From positions 73,098,001 to 73,162,000 of the forward strand of contig NC_086381.1 of NCBI RefSeq assembly GCF_036588685.1: a stretch of 64,000 nt of DNA, written 5' to 3'. Below are positions 24,854-46,397 of this stretch, piece by piece. The translations under genes were made by a program, and so were the position numbers. Each line of letters starts with the position of its first letter. The first letter of the stretch is position 1. The notes beneath the pieces are model-generated. The model searched no databases and was not told the DNA's origin. It saw only the letters and a program-made list of their open reading frames with translations. Source of the DNA: Mytilus trossulus. Lineage: Eukaryota.

Positions 24854-27751
24854 ATGTTGCAATCGGTGTTGTCCTTTTTTAGATTCAAAGTAAGTAAATA
24901 TAAATATTTATATTCATTTCTATATTAATATATATTTTTTTAAAAGGAATTAACAAAGTGATTACATAAGTTATGCATTATTTATTCCATTTCAAGATCG
25001 TTTGACCCAAATACTGTTTGAATTAGTGTAAACAATATTTTATTCAGAAACAGATAAATAAATACATCCATAAATGCAAAACATGGATTGGAAAACAAGT
25101 GAATCAAGGAAGTTAAGTCCATATCTTCTTTTCTGAAATATTAATCACTTCTGCAATGAATTTGTGATTTCTACAAACGTATATTTAAGGTTAAAAGTGT
25201 GGACACACATTGATGACACAGATGCTTTAGTCTCTCTTGTGGACAGTTGTATCATTGGCAATCATGCCACATCTTCTTTTTTATATTTACATTGTTGATC
25301 ATTGTTAGGAGTGATGAACATATATATTATATATATGCTGTAGCTCAATTATTTGTCGTAAGCTTTATCTAGATAACGTCTCTATAAATTCCATTGCATG
25401 TGGTAACAGTTACCAATATAATGAAGCTTTAAAGTTGGAAGATTGCTTTCAAATCCAGTAGAAAATGTCTTTTACATGTATGGTGTCTTTGTTGTGGTTT
25501 TGGTCTTAATTAATCAATGAGTATTGATAAGTATTGATCAAAATACAGTTGTCACGTAATTTTAAGATCAATATTATTCTTGCCAACATGAATCCCAAAT
25601 AGCAGCAGTGGGGGAATCCAGAACTTTTCCTAATGGGGGGCTGGCTGATTGGCCTAAAAAGGGGGGGGGGCTCCAGTGATGCTTCAATGATTCCCTATAT
25701 AATCAACAAAAATTTTCCAACAAAAGGGGGGGGGGGGGGGGCCTGGATCTGCCTATGAGCAGTAAATGATATTTGTAGTGTGATAGCTTGTTTTATCTGA
25801 GACTAATACATATAGATTCAACATCTATTAGTCACAGATTTTATTTTTTACAATAGTTCATAATTTTGTCTGTTTTATAATTTTTATTTCCCTCTAGATG
25901 TCCCTTTATTAACTTTCGTCATTTCGTTTGGTTGTTGATTATCCATCGTATCCTTTTATTCATGTGATACTTATCCAATGCAGAGTTAAAAAAAAAACTT
26001 TGTTACTCCTAAAATCTATTGACATCTAACAAAGGCACTTTTTATTTCTTTTTCAGAATGATGAAACAGATGGTTACAAATCTGTTTGTGGAATCTGTCA
26101 TCTCCGCAATCTTTCCAAACCATCAGTGACCTGGTGTTCAGAATGTTATGAACATCTTTGTAAAACTTGTGTGGATAACCACACATTTTCTAGAGCAACG
26201 AAACACCACAAAACAATTACAAATTTGGAATACAACAAGTTATCTTCCTTTATAAAAAATATTAAACCATTTTGTGAAGAACATGAAGACAAATACCAAA
26301 TGTACTGTCAAAGTCATGAAAGTCCTTGTTGCAGGAGATGTTTACTAAAAGATCATCATAACTGTAAGGACATTCATCCATTGGAAAATATAGTGCAAAA
26401 TGTCAAATCATCCAGTGCTTTCGAAAACCTGGAAAAAAGTTTGGAAGAAATGATGAAAAATATCACACAAATCCAGGAGAACAGACTAAGCTACTTGTTT
26501 TCTGTACAGAAGTCAAAAGTAGATATTGAAAACGAAATTCAGCTAATTAGACTCCAAATAAACAAACATCTAGATCAAGTGCAGAACAAGCTTATAATGC
26601 AGCTAAATACAGAGGAAAACAAGGTTGTGAAAGAGATAGAAACTTTCACCAAGTCACTGAAGGAAAAAGAAAAAGAAATTGATGAACTTTTGACAAATGT
26701 TCAGCATTTAAAAACATGTGCATCAGACCTTCAAGCTTTCTTAAGCATGAAAAAAATAGAAAAGACATTTTTTCCTTGTGAACAGTATATCCAGAGTTTG
26801 TTCAAAGATAGAATTCTTGACCAAACTACCATATCGTGCAGTATCAACAACAAAATTAAAAAAATACACACAAGAATACAAAGTTTTGGGAAAATCAATA
26901 TAAGTAAAAAGGAATGTGATATTGCCCTAGTGAATGAAAGAGAAAGACAAGCACAACTTATGGTTGATGTGTCTATTGACAACTGTACTCTAAAGTTGAT
27001 ACAGAAAATGAATAATTTTGGTAGCCAGGTGACGGGATGTGCAATATTACCCAGTGGAAAGAAGCTGTTTTGTAATTTTTCACCAGCTCGCCTTATATTG
27101 GTAAACATGGATAAATTAATTGAAAAGACTATTTCTCTGGAAACAATGAGTGCCTTTGATGTGACACCCCTTGATCGAGATACAGTAGCTGTGACCTCAC
27201 CAGTAGATTCTTGTATTACAATAGTTGACCTTTGCAGACAGGATGCCATAAGAACTTTCAAAACACATGACAGCTGCTTTGGAATAACATTACATGATGG
27301 GCATTTAGTATTCTGTGCCTCAAATAAAGGATTGCAAAAGTTAGATTTACAAAATGACAATAAAATTACAAATGTTGTGACATTTAAATGTTCTGATGAA
27401 TCATATGTAACATCATGGCATGACCAATTGTACTTAGCAGATGCCAAAATGAAAGCTGTAGTTTGTTTCAATACCGAAGGAGAAGTTAAGTGGAAATTTG
27501 AATTGGAAGAAACAATTCTAGGAGGAATATCTGTCGATTGTCATGGCATTGTTATGGTTGCTAGTCGGAACACTGCTAATATTATCTTGATCTCTCCTAG
27601 CGAAGCTCGATATAAACACGTTCTAGGCTGGGATGACATACAAGACAGCCCTCTAGCTATTGATTATGATAAACACACAAAAAGTTTGCTCATTTCTTGC
27701 ATAAGTGGATCAGCCTTTTTGTTTATTGTAGAAAAGAATAAATGTTCATAG
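24854..27751 (+). CDS. RING-less TRIM-like protein (2 B-boxes, coiled coil, NHL-like beta-propeller), ~576 aa
   Basis: Exon 24854-24889 (MLQSVLSFFRFK, GTAAGT donor, phase 0) joins exon 26057-27751 in frame; CGIC...WCSEC...LCKTCVDNH...HH; CEEH...YCQSH.SPCC..C...H; heptad region; propeller-like repeats. The small first exon is less certain than the main exon. Confidence 0.85.
25606..25757. mobile_element. Short non-autonomous DNA element with poly-G tracts
   Basis: Imperfect TIRs CAGTGGGGGAATCCAG / CTGGATCTGCCTATG; direct 5-bp flank AGCAG on both sides. Confidence 0.65.
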
Positions 27752-28960: not shown

Positions 28961-30873
28961 CTAGATATTACATTTTGTCCGTATTTTTCTCAATCTTCTA
29001 AGTCTATAAGGAATACCATAATCTGCCTCAGGTGTGTCTGCTACTAAGACATGTCCATTGTTGTTTCGACCAGACGGAGAATAGACTGAAGTGTTTAAAT
29101 TTTTCAAAAGCCTGTTAGGTTTATTTTTCATATCTTTATTTGCTTTGGAAGATTTTCTGTTCTTTATCAAAGTGAACACATTTGTTTCTGGTGATTCTTG
29201 GAGAGAAGTAAACAATCTTTTGACAGGTGATGGGATTTTGTTGACAGGTGTTCCATTGGAGTCATCCACCTCTGTAAAGTCATTTCGAATAATAGCCTTG
29301 ACCCTTGGAATGATATTTGTCACAGGTGTATGAAAAGAAGTGTTTCTATGGTTACCAAGGTCAAAATTGTCATCTGAATTATCCTGATCCCCTGTCTGTT
29401 TAACCATAAGATCATTTTCACTTGCAAGCTTTCTTTTTGACACCAAACTCTTTCTTTTACTTCTACTTTTCCTCTTTAGAGCTGTCTCAGCTCGATTTAA
29501 ACATGGTGATTTTTTTTCCTGAGAAATATTAACATTTTCCTCTTCTTCTGAAAATGAGAGATCTTCAACAATTGTTACTGGGGGTGTTTTCTCACCAAAG
29601 AATTTTAATGGTTCATATTTATTGCTTACACCTCCAGCAGGATTTCCATGGGAACCATGATGGCATGTACATTTTGAGCCTGATGTACTCCTACGTTTCC
29701 TTTGTTTCTTCACCTTTCTGGTTGATGCTTGGTTTCCACTGAATTGTGGAGATACCTGTAATATAGATTTATTTACTGTCAACTTAGTCCAGATAATCCT
29801 GCCGTCTGCTGTGGGTATTTTTTATTTTGCCTTTTTTTTTTATCCCACATTGCAGGAAGCATCAAACCAAAAAAAATCATAATTATGTGGACTATGTACA
29901 ATGTATATATATACTGTCAACTAAAAAAAGTACAAGAAAAAATGTGGATTACATATTTTTTTCTTGTCATTGTTCAGTTTCACTGTAATAATAAAGTGAT
30001 TTTCCTACACACCCAGCGGTAAGAACCCTCACGCTTATTATTTTGACTACAAAATTTTTTAGTAACTTACATAGTTAAGGGTTCAAATTGACATTTGATA
30101 TTTTGAAGATACAATGTAGTTGTCTCATTGGCATTCATACCAAATCTTGTTACATGTATATATGTTTAAATAAAAATAACAAGAAATGCTACATGAAAAA
30201 TGAAAATAACATTTTATAAATTTTGTTAGTCCAAATGACATTCAAGATTCTCTTCCAAACAAACACAAATATGTTGCTTTAAGCAAAGAGTTCTAAATAA
30301 TGGTTTTGGAGGGCAAGTCAAGGGACTCTACATTTTCAGTCATGGCCATGGCAATTCAAATGTAACATGAGGGGAAGCAATGAAATTGTTATTTAATTTT
30401 TCATTAATGTTTCCATAACCATGATAACATATAAAAGAGCAAGCTGATGACCTGAAATTTGGATTTTTTTTTTACATAATTTGGCTGTAAAAGGACGAAA
30501 TTTGGTCAGTTGTTATATTGTAGATCTTGATGCATGTTTGGCCTCATCGGTTTTCAAAATGATGAGTCAACCAGACTTTGGTGAGTCAAGGACTAATGGA
30601 CCTGCCTGGGAGAAAACCTTGAAGCATTATAGATAATATTGCCTTCAACAATGAGCAGAAAAGTACTCATCATATTGAGTATAATTGCTTAGCTATTATA
30701 TTCTTACTGTAATTTATTACCCATGATAAATCCCCTACAGGGACTGATTTTGCTGTGAGTGGATGTCTAGAACAATAAACTGGTGAAGGGACATTACTCT
30801 GTATGTTTACTGGACTCTCTGTGAAGATCAGGGGAGCCTTGTTATTGTGTAATGACTTTCTCCTCCTTGGCAT
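28961..30873 (-). CDS. RHNO1: RAD9-HUS1-RAD1-interacting nuclear orphan 1 (RHINO) orthologue, ~315 aa, 2 coding exons
   Basis: Exons 30873-30721 and 29755-28961 (phase 0). Motifs occur in the order I recall from vertebrate RHINO: MPRRRK..KAPLIF, SW|VSPQF, KYEPLKF, VLVADTPEADYGI..R.RR. An acceptor at 30924-30926 implies an upstream non-coding exon. Confidence 0.88.
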
Positions 30874-31197
30874 ACTGGGAGGCTAGACACAATCACTGCA
30901 TATCTATTTCTGTTTTAAAACTTCTGAAAATAAAACAAGCTTCCTATTAAGTTTTAGTGATATGAGATCTAATGATGGTTCAAGATGTCTTATTTTTAAT
31001 AGACAGGCTGTATCAGGCCCACTTGCCTCACACTTCATCTACAGGAAAAGAAAATATATTTTTATATGAAACCAACTTCCATTTTATGATTCAATGTAAT
31101 GTAGTGTGTCGTTTATTATGGAATCTTTTTGGTCAATGTGTTTTGTCTCAAAGTCTCAAATAAAATCACACTGTAATCTGTTAAAGATAGAATATCA

Positions 31198-31495
31198 TAA
31201 AATTTAGATTGGAAATGGGGAATGTGTCAAAGAGGCAACAACCCAAACCGAAGAAAAAAAACCAACAGCAGAAGGTCACTAACAGGTCTTCAATGTAGTG
31301 AAAAATTCCCGCACCAGGAGGCGTCCTTCAGCTGGCCCCTAAACAAACATATACTAGTTCAGTAATAATGAACGCCATACTAATTTCCAAATTGTACACA
31401 AGAAACCAAAATTAAAATAATACAAGACTAACAAAGGCCAGAGGCTCCTGACTTGGGACAGGCAAAAAAATGTGGCGGGGCTGTCTTAACATGTT
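31198..31495 (-). repeat. Dispersed repeat family D; other copies ~36975-37310 and ~51368-51700
   Basis: Shared ggaaatggggaatgtgtcaaag...gtcttcaatgtag...ccttcagctggcccct...caagactaaca. Confidence 0.8.
31436..31480 (-). ncRNA. 3' half of a twister-like ribozyme (family D)
   Basis: CCCC-GCC-ACATTTTTTT-GCCTG-TCCCAAGT-CAGGA-G-CCTCTGGCC. Confidence 0.6.
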
Positions 31496-31524
31496 TATAC
31501 ATGTAACATATTAAAACTAAACAA

Positions 31525-32820
31525 TAGATATAGGAAGATGTGGTGTGAGTGCCAATGAGACAACTCTCCATCCAAATAACAATTTAAAAATTAAACCATT
31601 ATAGGTTAAAGTACGGCCTTCAACACGGAGCCTTGGCTCACACCGAACAACAAGCTATAAAGGGCCCCAAAATTACTAGTGTAAAACCATTCAAACGGGA
31701 AAACCAACGGTCTAATCTATATAAACAAAACGAGAAACGAGAAACACGTATATATTACATAAACAAACGACAACTACTGTACATCAGATTCCTGACTTAG
31801 GCAATTGCAAATATTTGCAGCGGGATTAAACGTTTTAATGGGCCCAAACCTTCTCCCTTTTTCTGAAACAATAGCATAACATCACAACATATAAAAACAT
31901 ACGATAAAATATCAATTAGCAGACTTAACTCAATCAAAAAACGTATGATTACACAAAGAACGAATAAATTTGATCTGCGATATCTGAATACAAATGCACA
32001 GTTAATTAAATATTAGAGACAAACAGTCATGACCAAAAGGCTATCAAACAATTTCAAACACACTGAGAAATATTTAACCAATCAATGTTCACTTTAGAAA
32101 AAAACCGGTTTTTTATAATCTTGAAGTTTATACAAATGTTGTAAGAATAAGTGAAAAATTGAAGATATTACAAATAATCAAAGCTGGTATACAGCCAAGA
32201 TCCATATAATTAAAAATGACAAAAAAGCATTATAAACAGTATCAACAGGTCGAATTAACAAGAAAATACGATTTGAGAGTACTCGCAGTTACTGACAGCT
32301 AGTTAAAAGCCAAAACCAATTAATAGTAAAAAATCATGCATCAGAGACTAAAATCGACTAAAACACATCACAGGGATTTAGTATTTTAACGTCATTTATA
32401 GTCAAAGAAGACATGACTTGTGCAATGCCAAAAATAAATGTATCGACAGGTAGTAGTATAGTGAAGAGCGACTTCTATAGAAATGAAAGTTAACGTGGCT
32501 GTGTCCCCTATACATCTCGCCTCAAAAGATAATGAAATTTAGTTATGTTTTAATTTGCTAATGACAAAATCAATATTAGTGCCAATGTGAACTATATTCA
32601 GAGATCTAATTACAATATTGGTACGATAACCCTTACTTATAAGTTTGTTTAAAGGTTCGATGAGTTTACAAGGATCACATAGTGATTTCCTCGCTTTAAG
32701 TACAATATTACCATAAAATTTAGGATGAGAAATACCATTTTTAATAAGCTTTCTACAGGTATAGCCAAATTTACTAATCAAATCTTTGTATCTATGAAAG
32801 AATTTAGTAAAAGTTTTAAG
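31525..32820 (-). mobile_element. 5'-truncated retroelement, probably Penelope-like: C-terminal end of the RT ORF plus ~1 kb of 3' region (family A)
   Basis: ORF remnant LKTFTKFFHRYKDLISKF...GISHPKFYGN...KGY at 32820-32539 resembles the post-RT region of molluscan Penelope-like elements. Its distal end (gaagatgtgg...gccaatgagacaactc) recurs at ~1-50, 5760-5950, 8500, 18970, 25230, 40810, 44200, 58250, 61925. Confidence 0.65.
31774..31874 (-). ncRNA. Twister-like ribozyme, type P5, in the 3' region of the Penelope-like element (P4 5' strand damaged)
   Basis: TCAGA-AAAA-GGGA-GAAGG-...-TAA-TCCC-GCT-GCAAA(TA)TTTGC-A-ATTG-CCTAAGT-CAGGA-A-TCTGA. Confidence 0.6.
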
Positions 32821-33540
32821 TATATGTCTGTTACTGAAAAAAATCCATTTTACTCTCTAACATTATTACAATGTATACTATCATAATAAAAAATTTGCAT
32901 GCGGCACCCTAATAAATGTTATTTCACCTATTCAAAGATAAGATGTTACATAATTATAAATTAAACTATCAAAACTAAAGATCTCTTTCTTCAAGTCTTG
33001 TTTGTCATGAGAATTTTAGTATTATATATATTTATCAGTCTAATAATAAATAGGGATGAGCACAATAACAATTTTGTTTTAAATTAATTATTCTTAGGTC
33101 AGTGATACTGTTGGCTTTTTTCAAAACTACCCTTTCCCCTTTTTATTGGGAAAATATGCATAATTTTTATCAAATTGGGAAAATAAACCATGAATTTGAT
33201 AGGAGCTTCAATTTACAGACCCCCTTTCAAGAGGTAAACCCTCATTTATAATAAGACCCCTTATTGTCAGTGATGATACATAAATAGACTGAAATCTGCA
33301 CATATAGTCATTGTAGGCATGAAAAATGTTTCAATGAGTGTTTTTCAGTTTGTATTTAATGCACAATTACTACTGAGACTGCACTGTTTGGGAAAAGATT
33401 TTATTTTCTGGTAATTTTTAAAAGGCAAACATAATTTATCACTGTTAGGTATGAAAAAAAAAGTTACCTGCTGATAGATGTAGCGTCTCTTTGTTTAAAT
33501 TGAAAATGGCATAATGACTAAAATGATGTCGCAAATCCAT

Positions 33541-34148
33541 GACAAATCGCCCCACTGGCAAATCGCCCTACTCTTGTTTACCAACTCGCCCCACTTATAA
33601 AAAAGGCTAAAATCCCATTACAAATAGGTTGGATAGCATGCCCCACTTATGAAAAGGGTTAAAATACCAATGACATAAGGTCTGCCAACACGCCCCACTC
33701 TTGACAAGTAGATAAACCATGACGACCACTTATGAAAAAAGATGCAATCTTGTTGTATATCTACATGTACATTGTATGTCCCTGCCCCACTTCAATACCC
33801 ATGAAAACTTTAGTGTGGTGCTATAAATCAAATTGCTGTTATTTGAAATACTTCAATTGTATGATAATGATTCAATTAACAGGTTTATTTTCAGGTTATG
33901 TTATACATTTGTACAATTAATTAAGTTTACAAGTATAAATTTTTCTCCAATAATGATACGAAAATGAATTTGCAATTATATTTTAAGAATGTTAAAATCA
34001 TTTTTTCAATGAGTGGGACGAGTTGACTGGGGAACTCTTTTCACAAGTGAAGCGATTTTTTATAAAGTGGGGCGAGTTGTTCAACCAGTATGGGGCGATT
34101 TTTTAAAGTGGGCTGATTTGGTGTGGGGTGTTTTGCCAGTGGGGCGAC
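33541..34148. mobile_element. MITE with inverted subterminal CGCCCCACT repeats
   Basis: Left arm (cgccccact)n and right arm (agtggggcg)n around an AT-rich core. Confidence 0.8.
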
Positions 34149-34399
34149 ATCCACATCTAAAATCCCTAACAATAGAACCTAATTGGAAACGTAACGATAT
34201 TTCCATTCCTTTTATGAACATCAAAATATGTTAGAGTTTAAAAGAGTATTTGATACAGACTTAATCCCCCTTTCACAGGTAATGCCTAAATGTTAAATTA
34301 AATTATTGACCGAAAGTAAACTTCATTATGTTGTCATTGTTGATGGTTTTCTGAGACTGAAGAGGAAAACTAAAATCTCTAAAGTAAGGTGAATTTAAG

Positions 34400-35300
34400 G
34401 TGTAATAAGGCAAAACAGTCTGTATGGGCGTATAGATCTGAAGCAAAAACGTAAGCAAACGTACCATAAATAGAAAGTACTAAGTGATGACTTACAACAT
34501 CATGTTTAGTGTTTATAAAAAATCAACAAAACAAATGTTTTTATTTATACACATTTAGCATTGTCTGTGTTTTAAAACTGTTTATATGTGCTTCTTCCTA
34601 TGTGAAAAGCACTATCTGCGTCATATGAACATTTAAACAGTATGTTTGGTACTTGCATTGCAAATACAAACCGAAAACAAGTCAAGGCACATTCACATGT
34701 CTGTGTTTTGTCTGGTCGCCATATGTAAACAATACACATTTTGTTTTAAAACATCTGATTTGCTGCTAAAAATAAATTAACCAATGAAGTTCAGTTTTAC
34801 AAAAAGATATTTTATTTCAAGTCTCGTTTAATGACGTTATCCTTCGTGGACAAAATTTCATTGGTCAATCTTTAAATGTGCCCCAAAATTCAAAAATGGA
34901 TGACAGTCAAGCTTGGACTTGAAATGTAAACGCTAGTAACCTTTTTTTTTAGTTTGATTACCAAAATGTGATCAGGACCATCAAGTCTCCCACACAAACT
35001 TTAAAATTGAAAAAATAGTTATAACTGGCCACCTACCTGCCTGCACAGCAAATATGATGCCTCAGTTTTTTCTCTGTATAAGAACGAGCGCGGTGACATT
35101 TTAGATTCCGCACAAAGAAAGTTCCTTCCAATTGCTTTCATTTAATTTTGAGACGTTCAACCATTCAGCATTTACATTCGATATTCCAATAATTATCATT
35201 GTTTAACCCTTAACTTTCGTACAATTCCCCTCTCAAATTGAAATGCCGAAATTGAAAGAACTGCACACAAAATTAAATTTTGAACTGGTAACAAACTGTT
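34400..35300. promoter_or_regulatory. Candidate bidirectional RHNO1/FOXM1 promoter region
   Basis: Repeat-free stretch between two MITEs; CCAAT at 34781, 35128, 35186, ATTGG at 34860; CHR-like TTCAAA at 34889 and TTTGAA at 35279; outward-facing candidate donors near 34494 (-) and 35288 (+). Short motifs are weak evidence in AT-rich DNA. Confidence 0.4.
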
Positions 35301-35493
35301 GCAGGGAATTAACAATAAAAATCATTAGAATAAATGAATGCAAAAAAAACCCATTTCAAATGTGTTATTGACATTGAACATGTATTTCCATTGACAGCAT
35401 TGTTCCCAGAATTAATCTTAAATATGCATGTAACACAAATTATGCCAGAATCAGTGAACATTTCAAGATTTTTTCTCTTCTAGAATATGGTAT

Positions 35494-36388
35494 CAGGTTC
35501 GTTTGCACCCAATCCACTTTCGCACCCTACACATACATGTACGCACCCAAGGTCCGTTCGCACTCTACACTTTTGCGCCCAATTTTAATTCAAATCCAGT
35601 TGAATAATTGGAAAATCATGATTGTTGTTATAAATTGCTTTGGTGTAATTAAAACATAAGGTTTTAAATGAAAAACACAAAAGATAATTGTTTTAAACAG
35701 CTTGGTCCCTTTGATCTGAAACAATAGGGCTCTTCACGGTTAGTTCGGCCATATTGGATAGGGGGCAGATTTTTTGGAAAAAGGTGGAAATAGTATGAAA
35801 GTGTGGGAAATCCTATGTGTGTTTCCAAGCAACAGCTCTGTTTTAATGATGTTTTCCCATATTTTTCACACCATTTTCACCTCTTTTATGAAAATCTGCC
35901 CCCTATCCAATATGGCCGAACTAACCGTGAAGAGCCCTATTAAATATAGCAATACACTATTATAACCAAAACATGATAAAATTTATTCAACACACTAAAA
36001 TAATTCTGTATTCTGTATTAATCAAAGTCACTAAAATAACGCAGTCAGAATCTCACTTTATTTTGAAACAAGTGAAGAAACAAAGTTATATAGCAGTACA
36101 CTAACCAAAACATGATGAAGAGTTTTTCAACACAAAATAAAACGTTGACAGAATCCTACTTTATTTAGAAAGGATTAAATTTTTTTTTTAAATGCACTAT
36201 CCAAAACATGATTAAGATTTATTCAACACAAAAAAAATGCTATCTCACTTTATTTTGAGATAATGACAACAAGTATTAGAATACACTTGCCAAAACTTGA
36301 TTACTAAGCTATAGTTATTGAACACAAAACCAATTAAAATTGGGCGCAAACATGTAGGGGGCGAACGAGAATGGGTGCGAAATGAATC
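35494..36388. mobile_element. MITE with (TTCGCACCC)-type inverted subterminal repeats, hosting a nested MITE
   Basis: Left ttcgcaccc units and right gggtgcgaa units. Confidence 0.75.
35727..35937. mobile_element. Young nested MITE with ~47-bp perfect TIRs
   Basis: GGGCTCTTCACGGTTAGTTCGGCCATATTGGATAGGGGGCAGATTTT and its exact reverse complement; TA on both flanks. Confidence 0.9.
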
Positions 36389-37487
36389 ATATTCTTAGTA
36401 TACCTGACCCATACCTGTACTTTTTTTATTGCCTCATTTGTGTGTCTATGCTTTTTCTTCAAGCTTCAATTTTGAGATAACATGCTGCTAAGTACTTAGT
36501 TAACAATTCAAATCAGTTCAGATTTCAATACACAACAAATAAATTATTAAAACTTTGCCTACTCCTACTTGATCAAGTATTAAAGTCTTTGAGCAGAACA
36601 GTCTGTCTGCACAACTTAAAACCATGATTATGATATGACAGATGACTTAAATGTCTAGCAGCAAGTTATATGCTCCTTAGGAACAAGAACAGGCAAATGT
36701 ATACAGTGCATTCACACATCCAAACGGGTTACTTTATAGATTGATAAAATCAAATTTGACCTAAATGAAACAAATTTATTAGATTATATATGATTTTTTG
36801 TATGGCGATTGTTTTTTTTCTACAATGGACTCGTCACCAAACTATGATTGCTAAAAAATCATAAGAGGAGATTGGTTAAAAGTTAGTTATGAATGATGAC
36901 CATTCTTGATTATAACCAAATTAAGAAGCTGGTTAGAATATTATGATTTTTCTGTAAACAATAATAAATTATAAAATAGAGAATGGAAATTGAGAATGTG
37001 TCAAAGGTACAACAACCTTTCAGTAACCAAAGAGTAAAAAACAGGCGACAGCCACCAATGGGTCCTCAACTCTGCGAGAAAATCCTGCATCCAGAAGAGG
37101 ATTCCTTAAAGAAAAAATGTCTACTTGTTCAGTAAAAATGGATGTCATACTTAACTCCTTAACCTATAAATGAACTGAAATTAAAAAATAAATACTTGTT
37201 GTAAGACTAACAAAGGACGGAGGTTCATGACTTGGGTCAGGCGCAAAAAAGTGGCCGGGTTAAACCTCAACTCTTCTTCTATACATTTTTTATAACTCTA
37301 GCTAATGAAGATTATGTTGTGCAAAAAATGGTAATTGTAAATGAAACTCCTTTTTCAGCAGTTCATGTATTTTAAAAATACTCAAATACAATATGTATGT
37401 GTGCACGTGGAACATTGACAAATAAATTTGTTATTATATTATAGTTATTTTAAATTTTCTTTCAGGTAATGAGAATTTTTCAGAACG

Positions 37488-40400
37488 ATGTCATCCAACC
37501 ATGGAAGACATCTTGTAGGACCCCATTTCTCACAAGCTACATCTAAGAAAACAGTGTACCCATTACCACAGCAGTTAGCAGAAAAAGTGATAAAAGATCG
37601 AGGAAGAAATGCTTATGTTGTTGTGTTTGACACCAATGAAACAGTGGACAGTTCGTCTGGTTTGCCAAATTCTGATCGGAACAGTGTTTTGAAGACATCC
37701 TCCAGAATATTAAATGAAACAAATATTAAACAGGAAAATGATTCCTCTTCATTTCAGAAACTTTCAAGATCTAAGTCTACCTCAACTGAGGATGTCAAAA
37801 TCAACTTTTCAAACTTGGAATTTGAAGAATATGATAGCTCGAAGACAGCTGTCAAAGTATTTAGTGACGATGATATTGATATGGAAATTGATAAATGTAC
37901 AGTTAAACAAGAAATTGATGAAGGTTATGAGGAAACACACCATGCAAGGACTAGTGAACCAATTGCAGGTTACATGGTTATTCCGCCATCCTTCTCAACA
38001 CCTATGTCCTCAAAATTTAACTTATCAGGGTCTTCAGGCTACTTCAGTGGTGGCAGTAGTGGTATATATTCACAATTCAACACGCCAAGCCCTCTTCCAA
38101 CACCAGAACAGGGATTTCAACATCCAGCAGCTAGGCAAATTATACTGGTTCCATCCTCAGTTAATTTAGAAGGAAGAAATGTTGTACCTCAATACTCTAA
38201 CATTTCACCTATGTCTTCTTTAGCAGCAGGCCTCCATAATTCTGCAAGAATACAGTCACCTACAGTGTTTTCTACTAAGAAATTTACTGGAGCAGATGCT
38301 TTTTCCTTACCAGAAAATCCACAAGAAAAATTTGTAAATTTGGAACATGATGAAAGTAACAGGCCACCGTCAACAACCTCATTAGAAAGCACATCTAGGT
38401 CATCAACTCCATTCCAGTGGGAACAAGTTGAAAATCGTATAGTCATACAAGCTCCCAATAAAAAACCATTAGATCTTTCACTACCGAATAACAACAGAAC
38501 TGCAGCAGAAGTCCAACAAAGTATTAATGAAGTTCTTAAAGAAATGCAAAAACCAAAAACCACAACATCAAAAATTGGAGAAGTTGTCATTCATTGTGAC
38601 GTAAAACAGAAAGAGACTGTAGTGATGGTACAACAAGGAGACTCATCTAATTACACCATTGGACATCTTCCAATGTCTGACTCTCAAGAATCGATTAACC
38701 CAAGATCTTCTGAAATGTTGCCTCCATGTATAAAACAGGAAACAGATGACATTTATTCCCATGATTCTATTGGTTTTGGGAAATCCCCTGATTCATTTGG
38801 TTTTACTAATTCTCAAGAATCTAATGATTCTGTTGCTGTTCCTATGGAAAAAGGTTTGTCAAGTTGATGTAATTTTTATATTATCATGATAAAAGGGATT
38901 GAACGATTCTTCTAAGAAATACTTTTCGTGGAATATGAAACTGTCATGGTCATTTGTATATATCATAAGGTTTATTATTGCCATGTAACCATTTTACATC
39001 AAATTGCACGCGAGAAACTATACACTATGTTTGAAGACATGTATCATTAAGTGCATTATCAAAAGAGATGAAAATGTACACTCTCAGGGATAAAACAACA
39101 TACATGTAGTGAATGTAAAATCTTTCATTTTATTTTATTTATCTGGATACCTTCAGATCAATTTTAAAGGGCATTCAACTTTTTAGTTTCCTATATAGTA
39201 TCTGTCATTTAATTACTAAAAAAGCATGACATGTACATTTATAAAGATCAGGATTTTTTGTAGAGATCTTAGATACATCATTAACTAACATCCAATGGTT
39301 GGGTGGTATACAGTTGAAGAATCCAACAAAGGCAGACAAACCTGATCCATCAAAGTCCGTCCATAGCGCTACACCTGTACAATGGAAACGAATGAGTACT
39401 GATGACATTACAAGGGTAATTTATTGACGATAAGTAGCTGTTGGGGAAAAGTCTAAACATGCTAAAAGGATAAAAATGCACAATAATACATCCAAAGATA
39501 AAATTTTCAAATGAACATGAAAAAAGGACATAGTTCAAAGCTCTAAACATTTCAAAAATTCCTGTAAAAATACATGTAGTCTGTTTTATGTTGTTTTTTT
39601 TTAAATTTCATGCAAATTAACTTTTATATCAATGGTTTCAAAGATTTCCATGTGAATTTTTTACTCATAAAATATGTGCAAGTTATGAACATCATTCTGA
39701 AAGATAAGTTATACAATTTATCATTTCATTTTATAATACGTAAGATTTCTTTACACCTGTTACAGGTTGCTGCAGAATGTGGTAGGAAGAAAAGACCTCC
39801 ATTTTCTTACATGACCTTGATACAAATGGCTCTGCACAGTAAAGAAGACAAAAGAATGAGATTACGAGACATATGTGCTTGGATAGAAAGTACATTTCCT
39901 TATTACAAATACACTGCCAAACCTGGTTGGAGGGTAGGTCTGCAATTTAGTCTTCCAGCATGAAAAAAAAACTAAATGGGCTACATCTCTAAGAAATTTT
40001 CAACAATGTTTTACAATTGCGTAATGTAATAACTGCTGATCTTCTGACAATCCAATGTATTTTGTATGGAAATAATTAAAAATACTGTATGTTTCATAAG
40101 AATGTATAATTTTGATTTACTGTCAACGATCAGGAGGCAATTCTAAATCATATTTATTTCCATATAAAATACAACTGCTATGACTGCAAATGCTATCTGT
40201 GACAATGTTAAAATGCATAGAAAAGCAAAAGATTGACATAATTTCATGGTTGAATTGAATGAATTCTTCTTTTTTTTATAGGTTGTACCCTAAAAAAATG
40301 TTGATGTCATTATGGTATTTTTCCCAGTTCATACATGTTGTGCTTTGGTCAATATTTTTACATTAAAAAATATTATAAAGATATTCTGAATTAAATATCA

Positions 40401-43400
40401 ATTTAGTCCATGAACATGATGAAAACCACAAATTTACCAAAACAATGATAGTTTTATTCCGTAATCAAAGTGAAAACAAAACAACAATTATTTACCACAA
40501 CACATTTTGCCATATCTATACATGTAAAAGTATAACTTTTCTTTGATTTTTTTTTCAAAATCCAACATGTCAAGAAAAAATCTAAAATACAATGAAATAA
40601 TAACATTATTAGTTTTTAATATTTTTTTTTATCACCAATCAGGATTATGAGCTTTATTGAGAGTGCACATAGAAACAGTTGGCTATTTAAAAATTACTAA
40701 GTTATTGAAGGGTTTTAATTTAACAAAAAAAATTGGAGAACACAGTATAAGACTTAACAAGAATAAAGTTTGTTTTCCCTGCCTTTTCTACTTTAATATA
40801 AGAATAAGAAAGTTTGGTTTGATAGCCAATTAGACAATTTTCCACCAGAGATGATATTATGTAGAAGTTGGCATTAATAGGTCACTGTACAATCTTCAAC
40901 AATGAGCAACACCTATACCACATAACAAGATATAATAGGACCCCATATGCCAGATGACTACTGAATTTCAGGCACTCATAGAAAATGGCAGGTTTTAATA
41001 AACAGTCATAAGATTCTGGCTCTTTAAGTTTTTGTGAGAGTTGAATTTTATACACATTGTTCATTGTCACCTTTTGGTTAGTCATGTATTTAGAACACTT
41101 TTTGTTCTTGTGCTTATAATATATGGCCTCTATCAGATAAAAATCGAGTACTGTAAATATATCAATATATCTGTTATCCTTTTTCAGCTTGAAATATAAT
41201 CTCCATCAAAAGCCTGTAACTGATTGAAAATTGAGTTGTTATAAGAACCCTATAAAACAGACAATAATTCATCTATTATTTGGTATTGGAGCATGATGAA
41301 TGTTTCTGAAACCAATCAAAGTTGTATAGGTGTACATGTTAATGGGCACTTGCATAAAGGTTGATTTCTATACGACAAAGCTCATATGTTGTCCATGTAA
41401 TTACACTTTCTCTAATATTATAAAATGTTTTTCAGAATTCTATCCGACATAATTTGTCATTGTACAGTATTTTTGAAAGAGAAACCAATAAGAAACATGG
41501 TTCCTACTGGACTGTAAGGGATGATTGTCCAGAGAAATTAAAGTCTTGTCCTGTACGAGATACCAAAAAAGGTTTGAACTAACTGAAAAAAAATTCTGTT
41601 CTGCAACTTCATGTCATCCAGAAAACAATATCATACTTAGTAATATTGTATACATTGCTATAAATACTTCTTAGAGTAGACTGAGAATTCTAAACAGAAG
41701 TTGATTTCTATGTCAACTTGTTCCTTGCATATCCAGTTGGTGTTGCAACCAGTGTTTTAAGATGTTCTGTTAGTCATACATGGTATCCAGGGAAGGCATT
41801 TTAAAATGGGGTAACCACCTATAGAAGCTAATTTCCACTATGCGAAAACTAAGTTGACAACCACTGAAAGTTTAAATTTGGAAGTACCTTCCCTGAGTCA
41901 GTCCCATGTATTTTTTTTTAAGGCAAAATCCTGGAACTCATTTTTACATGTGACTTTTTTTGCACCTAAAGATTAAATTTCTACATACATGTTGTTCCAC
42001 TTGAATATTTAAGAATTGTGCAAACAACAGACAAGTTCCATATACACTGTCAGGCCACTTGTAACAGAAGCAGTTTTCACAAACTTTGTGATAATCGGAG
42101 TCAGATATCGTCACTTTTTAACAAAAGTTTTAAAAACATTTCCTTGATATCTTTGTCATTGAGACTCAAATAATACACCAAGGTCTAAATTATTATATTG
42201 TTTTTTTTCCCCGATCCCGACCCTGCCAAGCCATGTGTGGGTAGGTAGGTAGGGAAATAATTTTATTTTTCCAAAAAGCTTGAACAAAATCGTACAATCT
42301 AGCAAGCCAGGAAATTGGAAATGAATAAAATAATATTTGACTTAGTTTTGACAATAAAATTTTATGAGTAGCACTGTTTTTTCAGGGTCGGTCGGGATTG
42401 GGGAAACAAACAATATTTTATTTTAGGCCCAATACAATTATATTTTCATACTGCCATGGCAAAATATGACAAGTCCCTGGACTCAACTTGAATAATCTTT
42501 AACAAGAACCTATTCCAATGATACAAATTAATCAGTGTTCTCCCCAGACATTTCATTTACCATCATGAAAAACAGGAAAATTTTGAACACCATCCTGCTT
42601 TTAAAATTTAAAGCATTACATTCATAATGATCTATAAGAAAACCAAATCAGATAGCATCACTTTAAAAAATATAGCATCACATTACGATACCATGATAAA
42701 AAAGGCCCTGGGGAGAACACTGTAAACAGTTTAAACAGTTTATCATCTTGCTCTCATGTTGCAAAAACAAAATATCAAATAATCAATAAGGAGTCTATGA
42801 AATAAATCCTGAAATTTCTATGAATTTTATAATTTATCAGTAAGATGTGAATCAAATTAAAAAGTTTGTAATTTGTTTGATTTTTTTTTATAGATGAGGT
42901 CAAATCTGATTCCCCTCTTCCTTTTAATGGAATGATACCGGTGATTCCATCATATATACCACAGTCTACAGCTTCAACAACTTGTACAGGAACTCAGGCT
43001 AGAAAAAGAGGTAAAGAAGTTGTGCTGTTAATTCTGCAACTTTTGTGTATGCATTTATTATTTTGGTTGTTAAACAATGGAATAAAATAGAAGATTAACA
43101 ATCAAGATTTCGTGAAATGGTAAAAAAAACAAATAATACCTACAATTTACAATGTGAGTTTTCCTTTTTTGAAATCTATCCAGTTTTTATTTTCGCCAAA
43201 AATCTGTTTTTTGTTGAGAAGTCTTGGTATTAAAGGTGTACATCTTTGCGTTAGAACTATTATATAAAGTATATTTATCAAATTATTGGTCAAATTAATG
43301 AAATTAAATACTGCTAGGAAAGATTAGCTTAGTGTAAAAAATAAAGAAACACAGGAACCTTGCTCAAACTTTTAGTGAGCTTTTATGTATGGCATTGTCA

Positions 43401-46397
43401 GGAATAATAGTTTGTGCTCTACTAATAGACTGGATTTGACAGTTGATCTGAGGAAAAGTACAAATTACAAGTTAAAAATGTGTCTTCCTTCTGAATGAGA
43501 AGAATAAGCCAATTCAGAAAATCAGGACCAAATAGCTATTGTGAGCTTTTCTCTCCAATTTAAATGTTGATTAGATGTATATTTTGCCATATATGCTAAT
43601 ACTATTATATTTGTTTCTTATTATAAGATAAATAGTTGAAAAAATACTGTAAAATAATGCTTTACAGCAGACGTGTGATTGAAGGTTTATTGATCTTGTT
43701 CTTTTATATTTACAGCTGGGCCACAACCAATATTACCTCGGCCCTCGCCTATTGGTAGTGGTGGATCACTACAGACCTATGCCCTGATACCAATACAGAA
43801 TGTACCCAATTCTACAGCACAGAATCAAAATCTTCCTCTTACAAGTTCTCAGGAATCTACATCTAGTGAAAGTATGAAATATTTATTAGTCATATTAGAT
43901 TATATTATACAAGATTTATTGTTTAAATGATATTTCTGGTTAAGGGCATACGATACAGTTACAGGGAAGGTAATGACGTTGCTAACGTAAATTGTTATTT
44001 TCACGACGTCAAACAGTGACTTATCTGGAAAAGAGGCAGTTTTCGGCTGAATTTTATCATTCAAACTGATTTAATTTGAAAACGAGTGCATGGATCCCCA
44101 GTTTTTAAACCGTCATTTTGTTTCATTTTGCAAGGAGATTATGTGGACCAAATTTTATAAAACTGTAAATAGTGCAATTTTTTTAATTTTGATATATACT
44201 TTAACCTATAATGGTTTAATTTTTAAATTGTTATTTGGATGGAGAGTTGTCTCATTGGCACTCACACCACATCTTCCTATATCTATATACAGCAAAAAAT
44301 TACGTTTTTTCTCATTTCATGACCATTTGATAAATATGAGTTATTTCTGAACAAAAAAATGCATTAATTTTTTAGAATACTTATAAAATACAGAAATTAC
44401 AAATTATTTAACAAAAAACAATTTGTGTTTATCTTTTGAAACAAAAAAGTTATGTCTTTCTTTCGAAAAGAAAAATACAGCCACAAATCCGAATTTTGAG
44501 CAAATATACAAAATATCGACCTCATTTAACTCAAAAAGTTGCACATGAAGGTATATTTTTTATTACATATTTGATTTAATTGGGTAAAAAATAGCCTTTA
44601 TGCAAATTTTTATCAACTTGTAAATACAAGATCAAAACTGTATCATATGCCCTTTATACTGCACTGTTGATTTATTTTAACTCATAAAATGAAGGAACAA
44701 ATTGGTGATTCTAAATAGAAAAGGTATGGTTGGGAGATTATTTGGCCCTGTCAATTGACTAAAAGAAGAATGGTTGGATGATATCACAGTTATATTTTAA
44801 CCTGCTAAATGTTGTCCTTTATAAAAAAAAAAAAATGTTGGGAATTGCTTTGCCTTGATGATGCAAATTGATTTTAATGTCATAATAATTTTTTTCATCA
44901 AAAACGTTTATTTTCAAGATTTTTTGTTTCTAATTAGTATAGGGCACACATCAGTCAAAACCATTCTTTTGAAACAACAAGAAGATAAATATTAAATACA
45001 CCTCCTGTATTGATATCTTTGGCAGCGATTATGCTCTATCTTTTCTTAGCATCTGTTTGTCAAATTCACAATCTGTTTGATAAGTCTTCATCAACTGTCT
45101 TTTCATGGCTGTTTTACGAATAAACTGGAGATATTTTTCAGTTCTTTCTTATACTACAATGATTCAACTTTTCTGTCTGCAAATTAAGAAACTTGGAAAT
45201 ACAATTCAAACTTGCCTTTTCCCATCATCATTTATGATAAATAATACAATCTTATAGAAAGTTCATGAAAAGTAAACAAACTTGCAAATGAAATCATTCA
45301 CTGAAATTTAGATTACTTGCAAATGTTTGGTTTTTTTTTAATCTTTTTTTTTCCAAGTTTCTTAAATTGAAATTTCTTATTAAATATGATTTCATTGTAC
45401 AATTTATCAGTTTTATAAACATTATTTGTTTTAGTAATCTACCTGACTGTTGAAGCATCCACATTTACTTCTATACAGGCTTTAATTTTCATCTTCAAAT
45501 ATGTTCAGATATATTATTTTGTTTGAATAAAGAAAATTTTAACCTAATGAAAAGGGAAATTGTTTCTTGTATAAATTATTTCTATTATTTTTATCTGTTT
45601 CAGATTCTCAGTCCGATTCAAAGAAAGGCAATAAAACCAGAAAGATTGCTCCAAAATTGTCTCCTTCATTACTGTTGTCCCCACCAAACATTGTCAAACA
45701 GGCATGGCTTGATTCGCAGGCTCTGAGCAGTAGTGAGGCTGAAGGTCTAGGTGAAAGTAATAAAAGTGACAATGAAACATGTGCCAAAAGAGCCAGAACA
45801 GGCTTGCCTCAACCAAAACTATATTCCAAAGATCCTCAACCTGTTAGACGAACTAGATCTAGACGGAAGCAGAAGTTAGTTCCCAAAGAACGTGAATTAA
45901 TGCAAGATAGTTCAGATGAAGAAACTGAATATGCAAAGTTTGTGTCACGATTAGAAGAAGAACTTCCGACTCCGATGAGGAAATTACTCGATGAAAATGT
46001 TGAGAAATGTGATGAATCAAGTGCAATAACCTCTACTCCTCTTAAACACTCGGGATTCTTACCTCAGATGCCTTCACCTTTCTCAGGACTTACACCGCTA
46101 AAAAATGAAAATATTTTGGATAATAGCTTCCTAGAATGTTTGAGAGGTTCCCCAAAAATGACAACCAAAAAGTCCCCATCATCATCTTCCAGTTCTTCAC
46201 CAAAATTAGACTTGAATTTCATTGGTCTAACACCTATTAAGATTAGTAACCATGACAATTCTTATAATCTGTCCAAGTTTTTAGCTGAGTATCCCTTGGA
46301 TGCTAATATGGTTGATGATGCAGATGTGTTGCCGGTTGATCTATCTGCTTTGAACTGGAGTGCCGTACAAAATATGTTGCCTTTGGATAATAGCTGA
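37488..46397 (+). CDS. FOXM1: Forkhead box M1 orthologue, ~962 aa, 7 coding exons
   Basis: Exons 37488-38853, 39264-39415, 39766-39933, 41436-41571, 42894-43010, 43716-43871, 45604-46397; all GT-AG with consistent phase (2889 nt). SLTNIQWL motif; forkhead RPPFSYMTLIQMAL...KRMRLRDI..WIE..FPYYK..AKPGWRNSIRHNLSL...F.RE....SYWT (AKPGW is FoxM-type); QPILPR; C-terminal TPxK CDK sites and LSKFL...LNWS tail. Confidence 0.92.
42181..42430. mobile_element. Intronic MITE
   Basis: Inverted arms ttccccgatcccgaccctg / cagggtcggtcgggattggggaaa. Confidence 0.65.
42533..42722. mobile_element. Intronic MITE with hAT-like termini
   Basis: 15-bp perfect TIR CAGTGTTCTCCCCAG / CTGGGGAGAACACTG; no clear 8-bp TSD. 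Confidence 0.75.
43944..44652. mobile_element. Intronic non-autonomous DNA transposon with a nested family A fragment (~44200-44288)
   Basis: TIR GGGCATACGATACAGTT / AACTGTATCATATGCCC, flanks TTAA/TTTA. Confidence 0.75.

Follow-up and report, generated by a model that had tools for sequence, protein, structure and literature searches.

Head-to-head RHINO and FoxM orthologues in the mussel Mytilus trossulus, a gene neighbourhood probably dating from the bilaterian ancestor

The human genes FOXM1 and RHNO1, at 12p13.33, form a co-expressed bidirectional pair with a promoter that is conserved in vertebrates (Barger et al. 2021, eLife, PMC8104967); both start from a single CpG-island promoter that contains E2F and MYC sites (PMC8104967), and they have been studied as a co-amplified, co-regulated cancer gene pair. 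Conservation of the pair is discussed in that work for vertebrates only, and a 2024 structural paper describes RHINO, the RHNO1 protein, as found in vertebrates (PMC10937111); conservation of the pT202 motif of RHINO 'in metazoa' is mentioned by Day et al. 2018 (PMC6175577). FoxM is known in Spiralia, where Owenia has one and C. gigas is reported to be without (PMC9539403). Here, we describe a stretch of 64,000 nucleotides from the mussel Mytilus trossulus (the window; C9:73098001-73162000 of the 1.30-Gb assembly), AT-rich with a G+C content of about 32%, in which orthologues of both genes lie head to head.

The RHINO/RHNO1 orthologue occupies the minus strand, with a two-exon coding sequence running from 30873 to 28961, and the FoxM orthologue the plus strand, with seven coding exons between 37488 and 46397. 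Their start codons, at 30873 and 37488, are separated by 6,615 bp, and each gene is single-copy in the 1.30-Gb assembly. Between them we found no open frame of at least 80 amino acids, only repeats. An initial annotation, made from the letters of the window, had described a divergent pair with starts 6.6 kb apart and no gene in between; its coordinates, strands and distance are as claimed, and the interval is empty of genes as it had proposed. That human RHNO1 and FOXM1 have their mussel orthologues in these two genes, divergent as in human, is in our view close to certain on the evidence presented below, for which the spliced models of both genes were compared exon by exon.

The RHINO model comprises the following features.
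30721..30873, minus strand: coding exon 1, 51 codons (MPRRRK...KAPLIFTESP...DLSW), donor GT at 30720
29756..30720, minus strand: intron, 965 nt, GT..AG, acceptor AG at 29757-29756, splitting SW/VSPQF of the RAD1-binding motif
28961..29755, minus strand: coding exon 2, 264 codons (29755..28964) followed by the stop codon at 28963..28961

Scored singly against Pfam PF15319 (curated cut-off 25 bits), exon 2 passes alone with 26.3 bits, and exon 1 alone reaches 17.6 bits over profile positions 1-58. The product of exon 2 is 94% identical to the M. edulis orthologue (P0001) and 79% to the M. coruscus protein, and exon 1 is 100% identical to the N-terminus of P0001, with the RHINO proteins of amphioxus and Owenia aligning there too. 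The splice DLSW-VSPQF is read across in spliced orthologues, namely M. edulis P0001, M. coruscus P0004 and two Logan contigs of 1.1-1.7 kb (P0002 and P0003, products of 317-331 amino acids); since these cross the exon junction, the splice is genuine, and close relatives make the mRNA. A mytilid contig of 5 kb, the sole hit of a metagenome scan (L022), contains exon 2 only, with the acceptor directly 5' of VSPQF.

The orthologues P0001-P0011 carry a precomputed PF15319 match, and in a language-model search for look-alikes the M. edulis orthologue falls with chordate RHNO1 clusters (0.93; 204 of 256 features shared). A profile built from nine bivalve RHINO sequences retrieved 87 proteins, almost all with a precomputed PF15319 match, from bivalves, gastropods, a chiton, annelids (Owenia, Capitella), echinoderms, the hemichordate Ptychodera, amphioxus and vertebrates; the vertebrate matches, with E-values from 6e-6, are named 'RAD9, HUS1, RAD1-interacting nuclear orphan protein 1'. 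The invertebrate members are all annotated as 'uncharacterized' or 'hypothetical'. A genome scan with the Pfam family profile missed the mussel locus itself, so that an exon-protein query was used instead, and a sequence search of the PDB with RHINO gave chance-level matches only. These results identify the minus-strand protein as RHINO, through a Pfam match of exon 2 and a mollusc profile that reaches vertebrate RHNO1, and bear out the earlier remark that RHINO is easily missed in invertebrates.

In an alignment of RHINO from 14 taxa, mean identity is only 23%, and four short blocks are kept: an N-terminal MPR..K...K..L.F.E.P, then WVSPQF, (K)(Y/F)..L.F and (V/I)L..DTP..Y(G). Human RHINO binds RAD1 through 56-WVSPDF-61 and RAD9 through a hydrophobic motif at residues 88-99 (PMC10937111). 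The mussel counterpart of the former is SW|VSPQF, read over the exon junction (30726..30721 and 29755..29741), with WVSPQ invariant in all 14 taxa; that of the latter is NKYEPLKFFGE in exon 2 (29623..29591), placed opposite human residues 88-99 by way of alignment to marsupial and fish RHNO1, and the L and F of its (K)(Y/F)xxLxF block are invariant. The human site for TOPBP1-BRCT1 is pT202, with a hydrophobic triplet at -5 to -3 followed by D-T-P-E, in the peptide ..PVLVKDpTPEDKYGI (PMC6175577). Exon 2 of the mussel gene carries a motif of this type, VLVADTPEADYGI, at 29050..29012, in which L, D, T, P and Y are invariant across the 14 taxa. Mussel RHINO thus retains all three characterised human interaction motifs, from which binding to 9-1-1 and to TOPBP1 is predicted. 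The view of RHINO as a vertebrate protein is corrected by these motif-bearing invertebrate homologues, dozens of 'uncharacterized' invertebrate proteins could receive names, and the RHINO branch of ATR activation together with mitotic end-joining may, judging from the motifs, be general to bilaterians.

On the plus strand, the FoxM model is built from seven exons.
37488..38853, plus strand: coding exon 1, beginning with the ATG, 455 codons and 1 nt, donor GT at 38854
39264..39415, plus strand: exon 2, with the pre-forkhead motif SLTNIQWLGG at 39278..39307 and colinear tblastn matches
39766..39933, plus strand: forkhead exon A, PF00250 positions 1-50, 57.1 bits
41436..41571, plus strand: forkhead exon B, PF00250 positions 49-87, 32.1 bits, LSLYSIFERE..HGSYW
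42894..43010, plus strand: probable exon 5, phase 1 to phase 1, placed by splice signals and frame, fitting orthologues just before ..KKGPQPILPRP
43716..43871, plus strand: exon 6, GPQPILPRP...LQTYALIPIQN, tblastn identity of 54-76% to three bivalve FoxM
45604..46397, plus strand: last exon, with the motifs STP.K, LPSP..G.TP, D.SFLE.L and LNWSAV, and the stop codon

The two halves of the forkhead domain were scored separately against PF00250 (cut-off 27 bits). Intron phases are consistent at all junctions (1, 0, 0, 1, 1, 1), and the exon lengths total 2,889 nt, or 963 codons including the stop, a model colinear exon by exon with bivalve FoxM orthologues of 975-1,085 amino acids. Exon 1 is colinear with the N-termini of the Argopecten, Saccostrea and Mactra proteins, and a query with the 459 amino acids of the first exon, under a length filter that shuts out full-length proteins, matched only three mytilid fragments (P0012-14), at 55-56% identity. 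The last exon is 32-42% identical to the same three FoxM proteins over about 245 amino acids, with E-values down to 2e-42.

Among solved structures, exon A matches FOXM1 at 65.8 bits, with FOXG1 as the next class at 36.8 and FOXN3, FOXK, FOXP and FOXO at 20-34, and exon B also places FOXM1 first, though weakly. Against the mussel genome, exon A scores 126.8 bits at its own locus and 41.8 at the next, leaving no close paralogue. The top single-domain matches of a HMMER search through 1.84 billion representatives include the FoxM proteins, named FoxM1 or FoxM1-like, of Argopecten, Saccostrea and Mactra, others named as FoxM from amphioxus, Saccoglossus, Acanthaster, Phallusia, Ciona and vertebrates, and unnamed or 'uncharacterized' forkhead proteins of Sinanodonta, Dreissena, Patella, Lingula, Tubulanus, Owenia, Styela and Antedon. 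We then placed the gene in a tree inferred by maximum likelihood from exon A (42 rows, 48 columns), holding the window gene, 21 FoxM sequences, most of them named FoxM or FOXM1 by their source and the rest uncharacterised or unnamed top matches, and 20 other forkhead loci of this genome, exclusive of its FoxO, FoxP and FoxN1/4 genes. The window gene and the 21 FoxM rows form one clade with 97/97 support. Inside it, the window gene is part of a group of bivalve FoxM sequences supported at 97/88; the 20 other loci, among them FoxJ2/3-, FoxJ1-, FoxK- and FoxN2/3-like genes, all fall outside the FoxM clade.

The second half of the domain points to the same class. The recognition-helix and wing region of the window gene, LSLYSIFERETNKKHGSYW, is of the FoxM type, LSL[HY]xxFxRE with a short loop and without KVPR..PGKG, a pattern found in almost all FoxM rows with slight departures in Owenia and Patella; the other forkhead loci of the genome have the LN[KE]CF.K.PR..PGKG type in 20 of 20 cases. 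A motif of the SLTNIQWLGG type stands 5' of the forkhead in nearly all full-length FoxM relatives examined (vertebrates, amphioxus, tunicates, echinoderms, a hemichordate, a brachiopod and molluscs) and is weaker in the annelid Owenia. Near the C-terminus, LNWSAV is colinear with NLNWS of bivalve FoxM, with an end of the (N/D)xSWS type; the specificity of these pre-domain and C-terminal motifs for FoxM is drawn from the compared sequences, not from a curated definition.

One result tells against this assignment. When a half-domain of amphioxus FoxM was searched against the mussel genome, a locus on contig C12, called FoxJ2/3-like by its sequence, scored best with 60.8 bits, and the window gene ranked fourth with 52.6; the reverse search with full-length amphioxus FoxM is confounded, since Fox genes that lack introns align with the entire domain as a single stretch. 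The plus-strand gene might on this ground be a divergent FoxJ2/3-type or other clade-II forkhead gene, and the position of the intron within the domain is common to FoxJ2/3, FoxJ1, FoxK and FoxM. Against this stand the 97/97 clade, the 29-bit margin of FOXM1 among solved structures, the FoxM-type second half-domain, the SLTNIQWLGG and C-terminal motifs and the presence of a separate FoxJ2/3-like gene on C12, which together make such an identity barely credible. The fourth rank in the reverse search therefore indicates that the mussel FoxM forkhead is divergent, and we assign the gene to FoxM because of the tree, the second half-domain, the flanking motifs and the colinearity with orthologues. 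Its placement in FoxM rather than FoxN or FoxJ, proposed beforehand, is upheld by the exon-A scores (65.8 against 36.8 bits) and by a clade that excludes the FoxJ- and FoxN-like loci.

Two further observations concern forkhead genes elsewhere. Five FoxM-like proteins of 368-517 amino acids (P0138, P0179, P0191, P0221 and P0228) have SLTNI.WLGR and divergent forkhead domains and may represent a second FoxM-type gene in some lineage. At C4:22443000-22653000, the mussel genome holds at least 25 single-exon forkhead genes in tandem, with frames of about 242 amino acids, which look FoxQ2-like by their wing motif FIK.GR..NGKG.YW, in line with foxQ2 expansions published in Spiralia (PMC9539403).

Protein accessions and locus tags in GenBank and ENA are issued in feature order along a record. 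We used this convention as a linkage test, taking the order of FoxM and RHINO accessions or tags on the same contig as evidence of adjacency, and obtained seven strictly consecutive pairs.
Owenia fusiformis (annelid): FoxM CAH1785768, RHINO CAH1785769; consecutive, same contig
Branchiostoma lanceolatum: FOXM1 CAH1257117, RHINO CAH1257118 and CAH1257119 (Hypp1782); consecutive, same contig
Mactra antiquata: FoxM KAL4225068, RHINO KAL4225069; consecutive, same contig
Sinanodonta woodiana: FoxM ACJMK2_020250, RHINO ACJMK2_020249; consecutive tags, same contig
Patella caerulea (limpet): FoxM SNE40_006700, RHINO SNE40_006699; consecutive tags, same contig
Dreissena polymorpha, copy 1: FoxM KAH3830428, RHINO KAH3830429; consecutive, same contig
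Dreissena polymorpha, copy 2: FoxM KAH3752513, RHINO KAH3752514; consecutive, same contig

In Saccostrea echinata and Argopecten irradians, a single contig carries both proteins, and their XP numbers differ by 6-8. Adjacency is thereby covered in Annelida, in Mollusca (Gastropoda and four bivalve orders, counting that of the window) and in Cephalochordata, with Vertebrata added from PMC8104967. The weak side of this evidence is that outside the mussel it rests on a numbering convention, with strand and distance unseen. Were the adjacency an artefact of numbering or annotation, or had the pairing arisen repeatedly, the likeness between Mytilus and human would be coincidental, and the numbering gaps of Saccostrea and Argopecten, which differ by 6-8 and not by 1, could be read in that sense, as could the fact that the other species are known from numbers and not from DNA. 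The seven consecutive pairs, however, come from the annotations of five submitters, the two members of each pair being placed on a contig of identical length. Simple arithmetic for a genome of 30-60 thousand genes puts the odds of two given genes lying next to each other by chance at about 1 in 15-30 thousand for each lineage, or roughly 1 in 10^4 per genome. We consequently judge coincidence or artefact to be very improbable. Because chance adjacency is so low across lineages, common descent from a bilaterian ancestor is by far the simplest account, and the linkage of RHINO and FoxM, as traced by annotation numbering in four phyla, is with good confidence ancestral and older than the split of protostomes and deuterostomes. 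This is the age that the initial annotation had suggested from the mussel pair, and the consecutive accessions or tags in an annelid, amphioxus, a limpet and three further bivalve orders support it. Adjacency since the bilaterian ancestor argues for an old functional arrangement, not a mammalian accident. Our literature search found no paper on RHINO-FoxM linkage outside vertebrates, nor one tying RHNO1 to invertebrates or to microsynteny.

Extra copies were seen in two of these species. Dreissena has two whole FoxM-RHINO pairs on different chromosomes, more than 90% identical (P0123/P0255 and P0263/P0262), and Patella caerulea has two RHINO copies (P0033/P0264); these may be recent duplications or assembly haplotigs. 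FoxM is reported lost in Panarthropoda and planarians (PMC8918179), neither gene turned up in arthropods, and the 87 profile matches contain no arthropod, nematode or flatworm RHINO, in a word-limited search that does not by itself show absence. RHINO and FoxM may have been lost together.

We next consider how the two mussel genes are transcribed. Contigs from four runs of three studies were aligned to 30721-36720, the exon with the FoxM ATG lying beyond that stretch; the runs are taken as RNA by guess, and such contigs cannot give starts, strand or expression level. RHINO is transcribed, with contig depths of 72-88 in three of the four runs, and its upstream region adds one feature to the model.
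30874..31239, minus strand: 5' untranslated region of RHINO, joined to exon 1 without a break in RNA-like contigs

In two runs from two studies, RNA-like contigs are colinear upstream of the RHINO ATG to 31108 (X5 record 17) and 31239 (X1 record 1), and the RHINO contigs end where a repeat breaks the assembly, so the transcription start of RHINO is at or beyond 31239. AG acceptor-like sites do occur 5' of both ATGs, and the earlier reading that both start codons are preceded by splice acceptors stands to that extent; on the RHINO side, the contigs reaching 31108 and 31239 read through these sites, which are thus unused there, leaving the 5' untranslated region unspliced in those contigs at least. 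One X5 contig (record 17) has 276 extra nt at 30965/30967, inside the RHINO 5' untranslated region, which is an insertion polymorphism or another allele.

The remainder of the interval consists largely of repeats, two of which are delimited here.
31524..32822, no strand assigned: young dispersed repeat of 1.3 kb; 16,386 first-look candidates yielded more than 40 copies in the genome with 97-99% identity
35723..35941, no strand assigned: self-complementary element of 217 nt resembling a miniature inverted-repeat transposable element (MITE-like), matching itself in reverse at 78% identity

Summed depths of RNA-like contigs reach 10^4-10^5 over 31.1-31.9 kb, and the element at 31524-32822 is a repeat of very young age and abundant representation. 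In each of the four runs there are contigs that leave out 216-217 nt, passing from 35724/5 to 35942, and we therefore regard the MITE-like element as polymorphic for presence or absence. More repeats lie at about 31.1-31.5, 33.1-33.5 and 35.5-36.3 kb. Between 33.7 and 35.3 kb there is almost no RNA-like contig coverage, a near-silent stretch that agrees with the lack of a gene between RHINO and FoxM.

Taken as a whole, the reading that we favour, with moderate confidence, is an ancestral divergent pair most likely kept through shared upstream regulation. The neighbourhood would then have been inherited from the bilaterian ancestor, not assembled independently, and one shared upstream regulatory region would switch on both genes in proliferating cells, around G2/M; FoxM would go on to drive the mitotic programme, and RHINO would supply the 9-1-1/TOPBP1 adaptor needed to signal replication stress and to repair mitotic breaks. 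That shared regulation is what kept the pair together is argued by analogy with the vertebrate pair, which is experimentally co-regulated (PMC8104967), and we hold the case for and against it to be evenly balanced. A more specific version would have a divergent unit of bilaterian age in which one compact promoter couples mitotic transcription to a 9-1-1/TOPBP1 (and Pol-theta) break-handling adaptor, selected for more than 500 million years and lost together in Ecdysozoa, with RHINO, its partner-binding motifs all present, as a checkpoint component of bilaterians at large and not an invention of vertebrates; all of this together is tentative, and we put it slightly short of an even chance.

Several features of the interval weigh against a shared promoter. 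A distance of 6.6 kb separates the ATGs, and the known RHINO transcript end at 31239 is still 6.2 kb from the FoxM ATG, which sets an upper bound of 6.2 kb on the spacing of the two starts, compared with less than about 1 kb for a bidirectional promoter. No GT..AG joint of a 5'-untranslated-region intron occurs among the contig joints listed for 30721-36720. The interval has no CpG island, CpG observed/expected reaching 0.8-1.1 only inside a transposon; molluscs are not expected to have CpG islands of the vertebrate kind, and this absence accordingly weighs little. A motif scan of the interval for E2F, CCAAT, CHR, Myb and NRF1 showed no clear enrichment, with no E2F site, 24 CCAAT against 15.7 expected and 11 CHR against 14.9. 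Low-depth contig pieces at 33.4-34.0, 35.0-35.6 and 36.4-36.7 kb surround a coverage hole at about 34.1-34.9 kb, within the CpG-richer part of the interval; this hints at a compact promoter, a weak signal that serves as a lead only. A true bidirectional promoter, with starts less than 1 kb apart, is therefore at most a possibility in the mussel.

The same observations lend themselves to another account, in which the linkage is ancestral but has been kept passively, by slow rearrangement, or for a reason other than a common promoter, the Mytilus promoters being separate and several kilobases apart and the two genes not necessarily co-regulated. An interval of 6.2-6.6 kb full of transposon-derived sequence, without CpG island or enrichment of cell-cycle promoter motifs, speaks for it; genomes of this kind are known to hold ancient microsyntenic pairs by the hundred (PMC3514665), and the RHINO-FoxM pair is seen in slow-evolving lineages (molluscs, annelids, amphioxus). 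For a random pair, however, it would be unusual to remain immediate neighbours in at least four phyla, through the Dreissena duplication and in vertebrates, where co-regulation is experimental (PMC8104967), and the interval becomes much shorter once the 1.3-kb insertion and other repeats are removed; the hole at 34.1-34.9 kb with its low-depth flanks, which could be a compact promoter, is a further if weak point. We therefore consider passive retention unlikely, though still the foremost competitor of retention through shared regulation. Mussel and oyster embryos, Owenia and amphioxus are convenient invertebrates in which the coupling can be tested.

The surroundings of the pair can be described briefly. 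Just beyond the 3' end of RHINO lies a 541-amino-acid open frame on the plus strand (26126-27751), with a B-box match of 23.6 bits, below the cut-off of 24.1, and a C-terminal stretch like a beta-propeller; it looks like the TRIM/NHL-like genes expanded in bivalves. Downstream of FoxM, no long open frames occur up to the end of the window at 64 kb.

Set beside described systems, the mussel locus is closest to human FOXM1/RHNO1, with the same two orthologues in the same head-to-head orientation. Common to both species are the RAD1-, RAD9- and TOPBP1-binding motifs of RHINO and, in FoxM, the forkhead, the pre-domain SLTNIQWLG and the C-terminal motifs. They differ upstream: in the mussel the ATGs are 6.6 kb apart and neither a CpG island nor an E2F site was found, whereas the human genes share a CpG-island promoter. 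The pairs of Irimia et al. 2012 (Genome Res, PMC3514665) are likewise unrelated neighbours kept adjacent across phyla, attributed to cis-regulatory constraint; the constraint described there involves enhancers of a developmental gene within a bystander gene, while for RHINO and FoxM a shared promoter region is proposed, and FOXM1 is not named in the main text of that paper. The head-to-head COL4 genes (PMC12141075) are also a divergent arrangement retained over animal evolution, but their partners are paralogues and subunits of one protein, whereas RHINO and FoxM are unrelated in sequence. The locus thus represents the known FOXM1/RHNO1 pair in a new and distant lineage; what is new is a RHINO that extends across Bilateria with its motifs intact, and an adjacency that is ancient.

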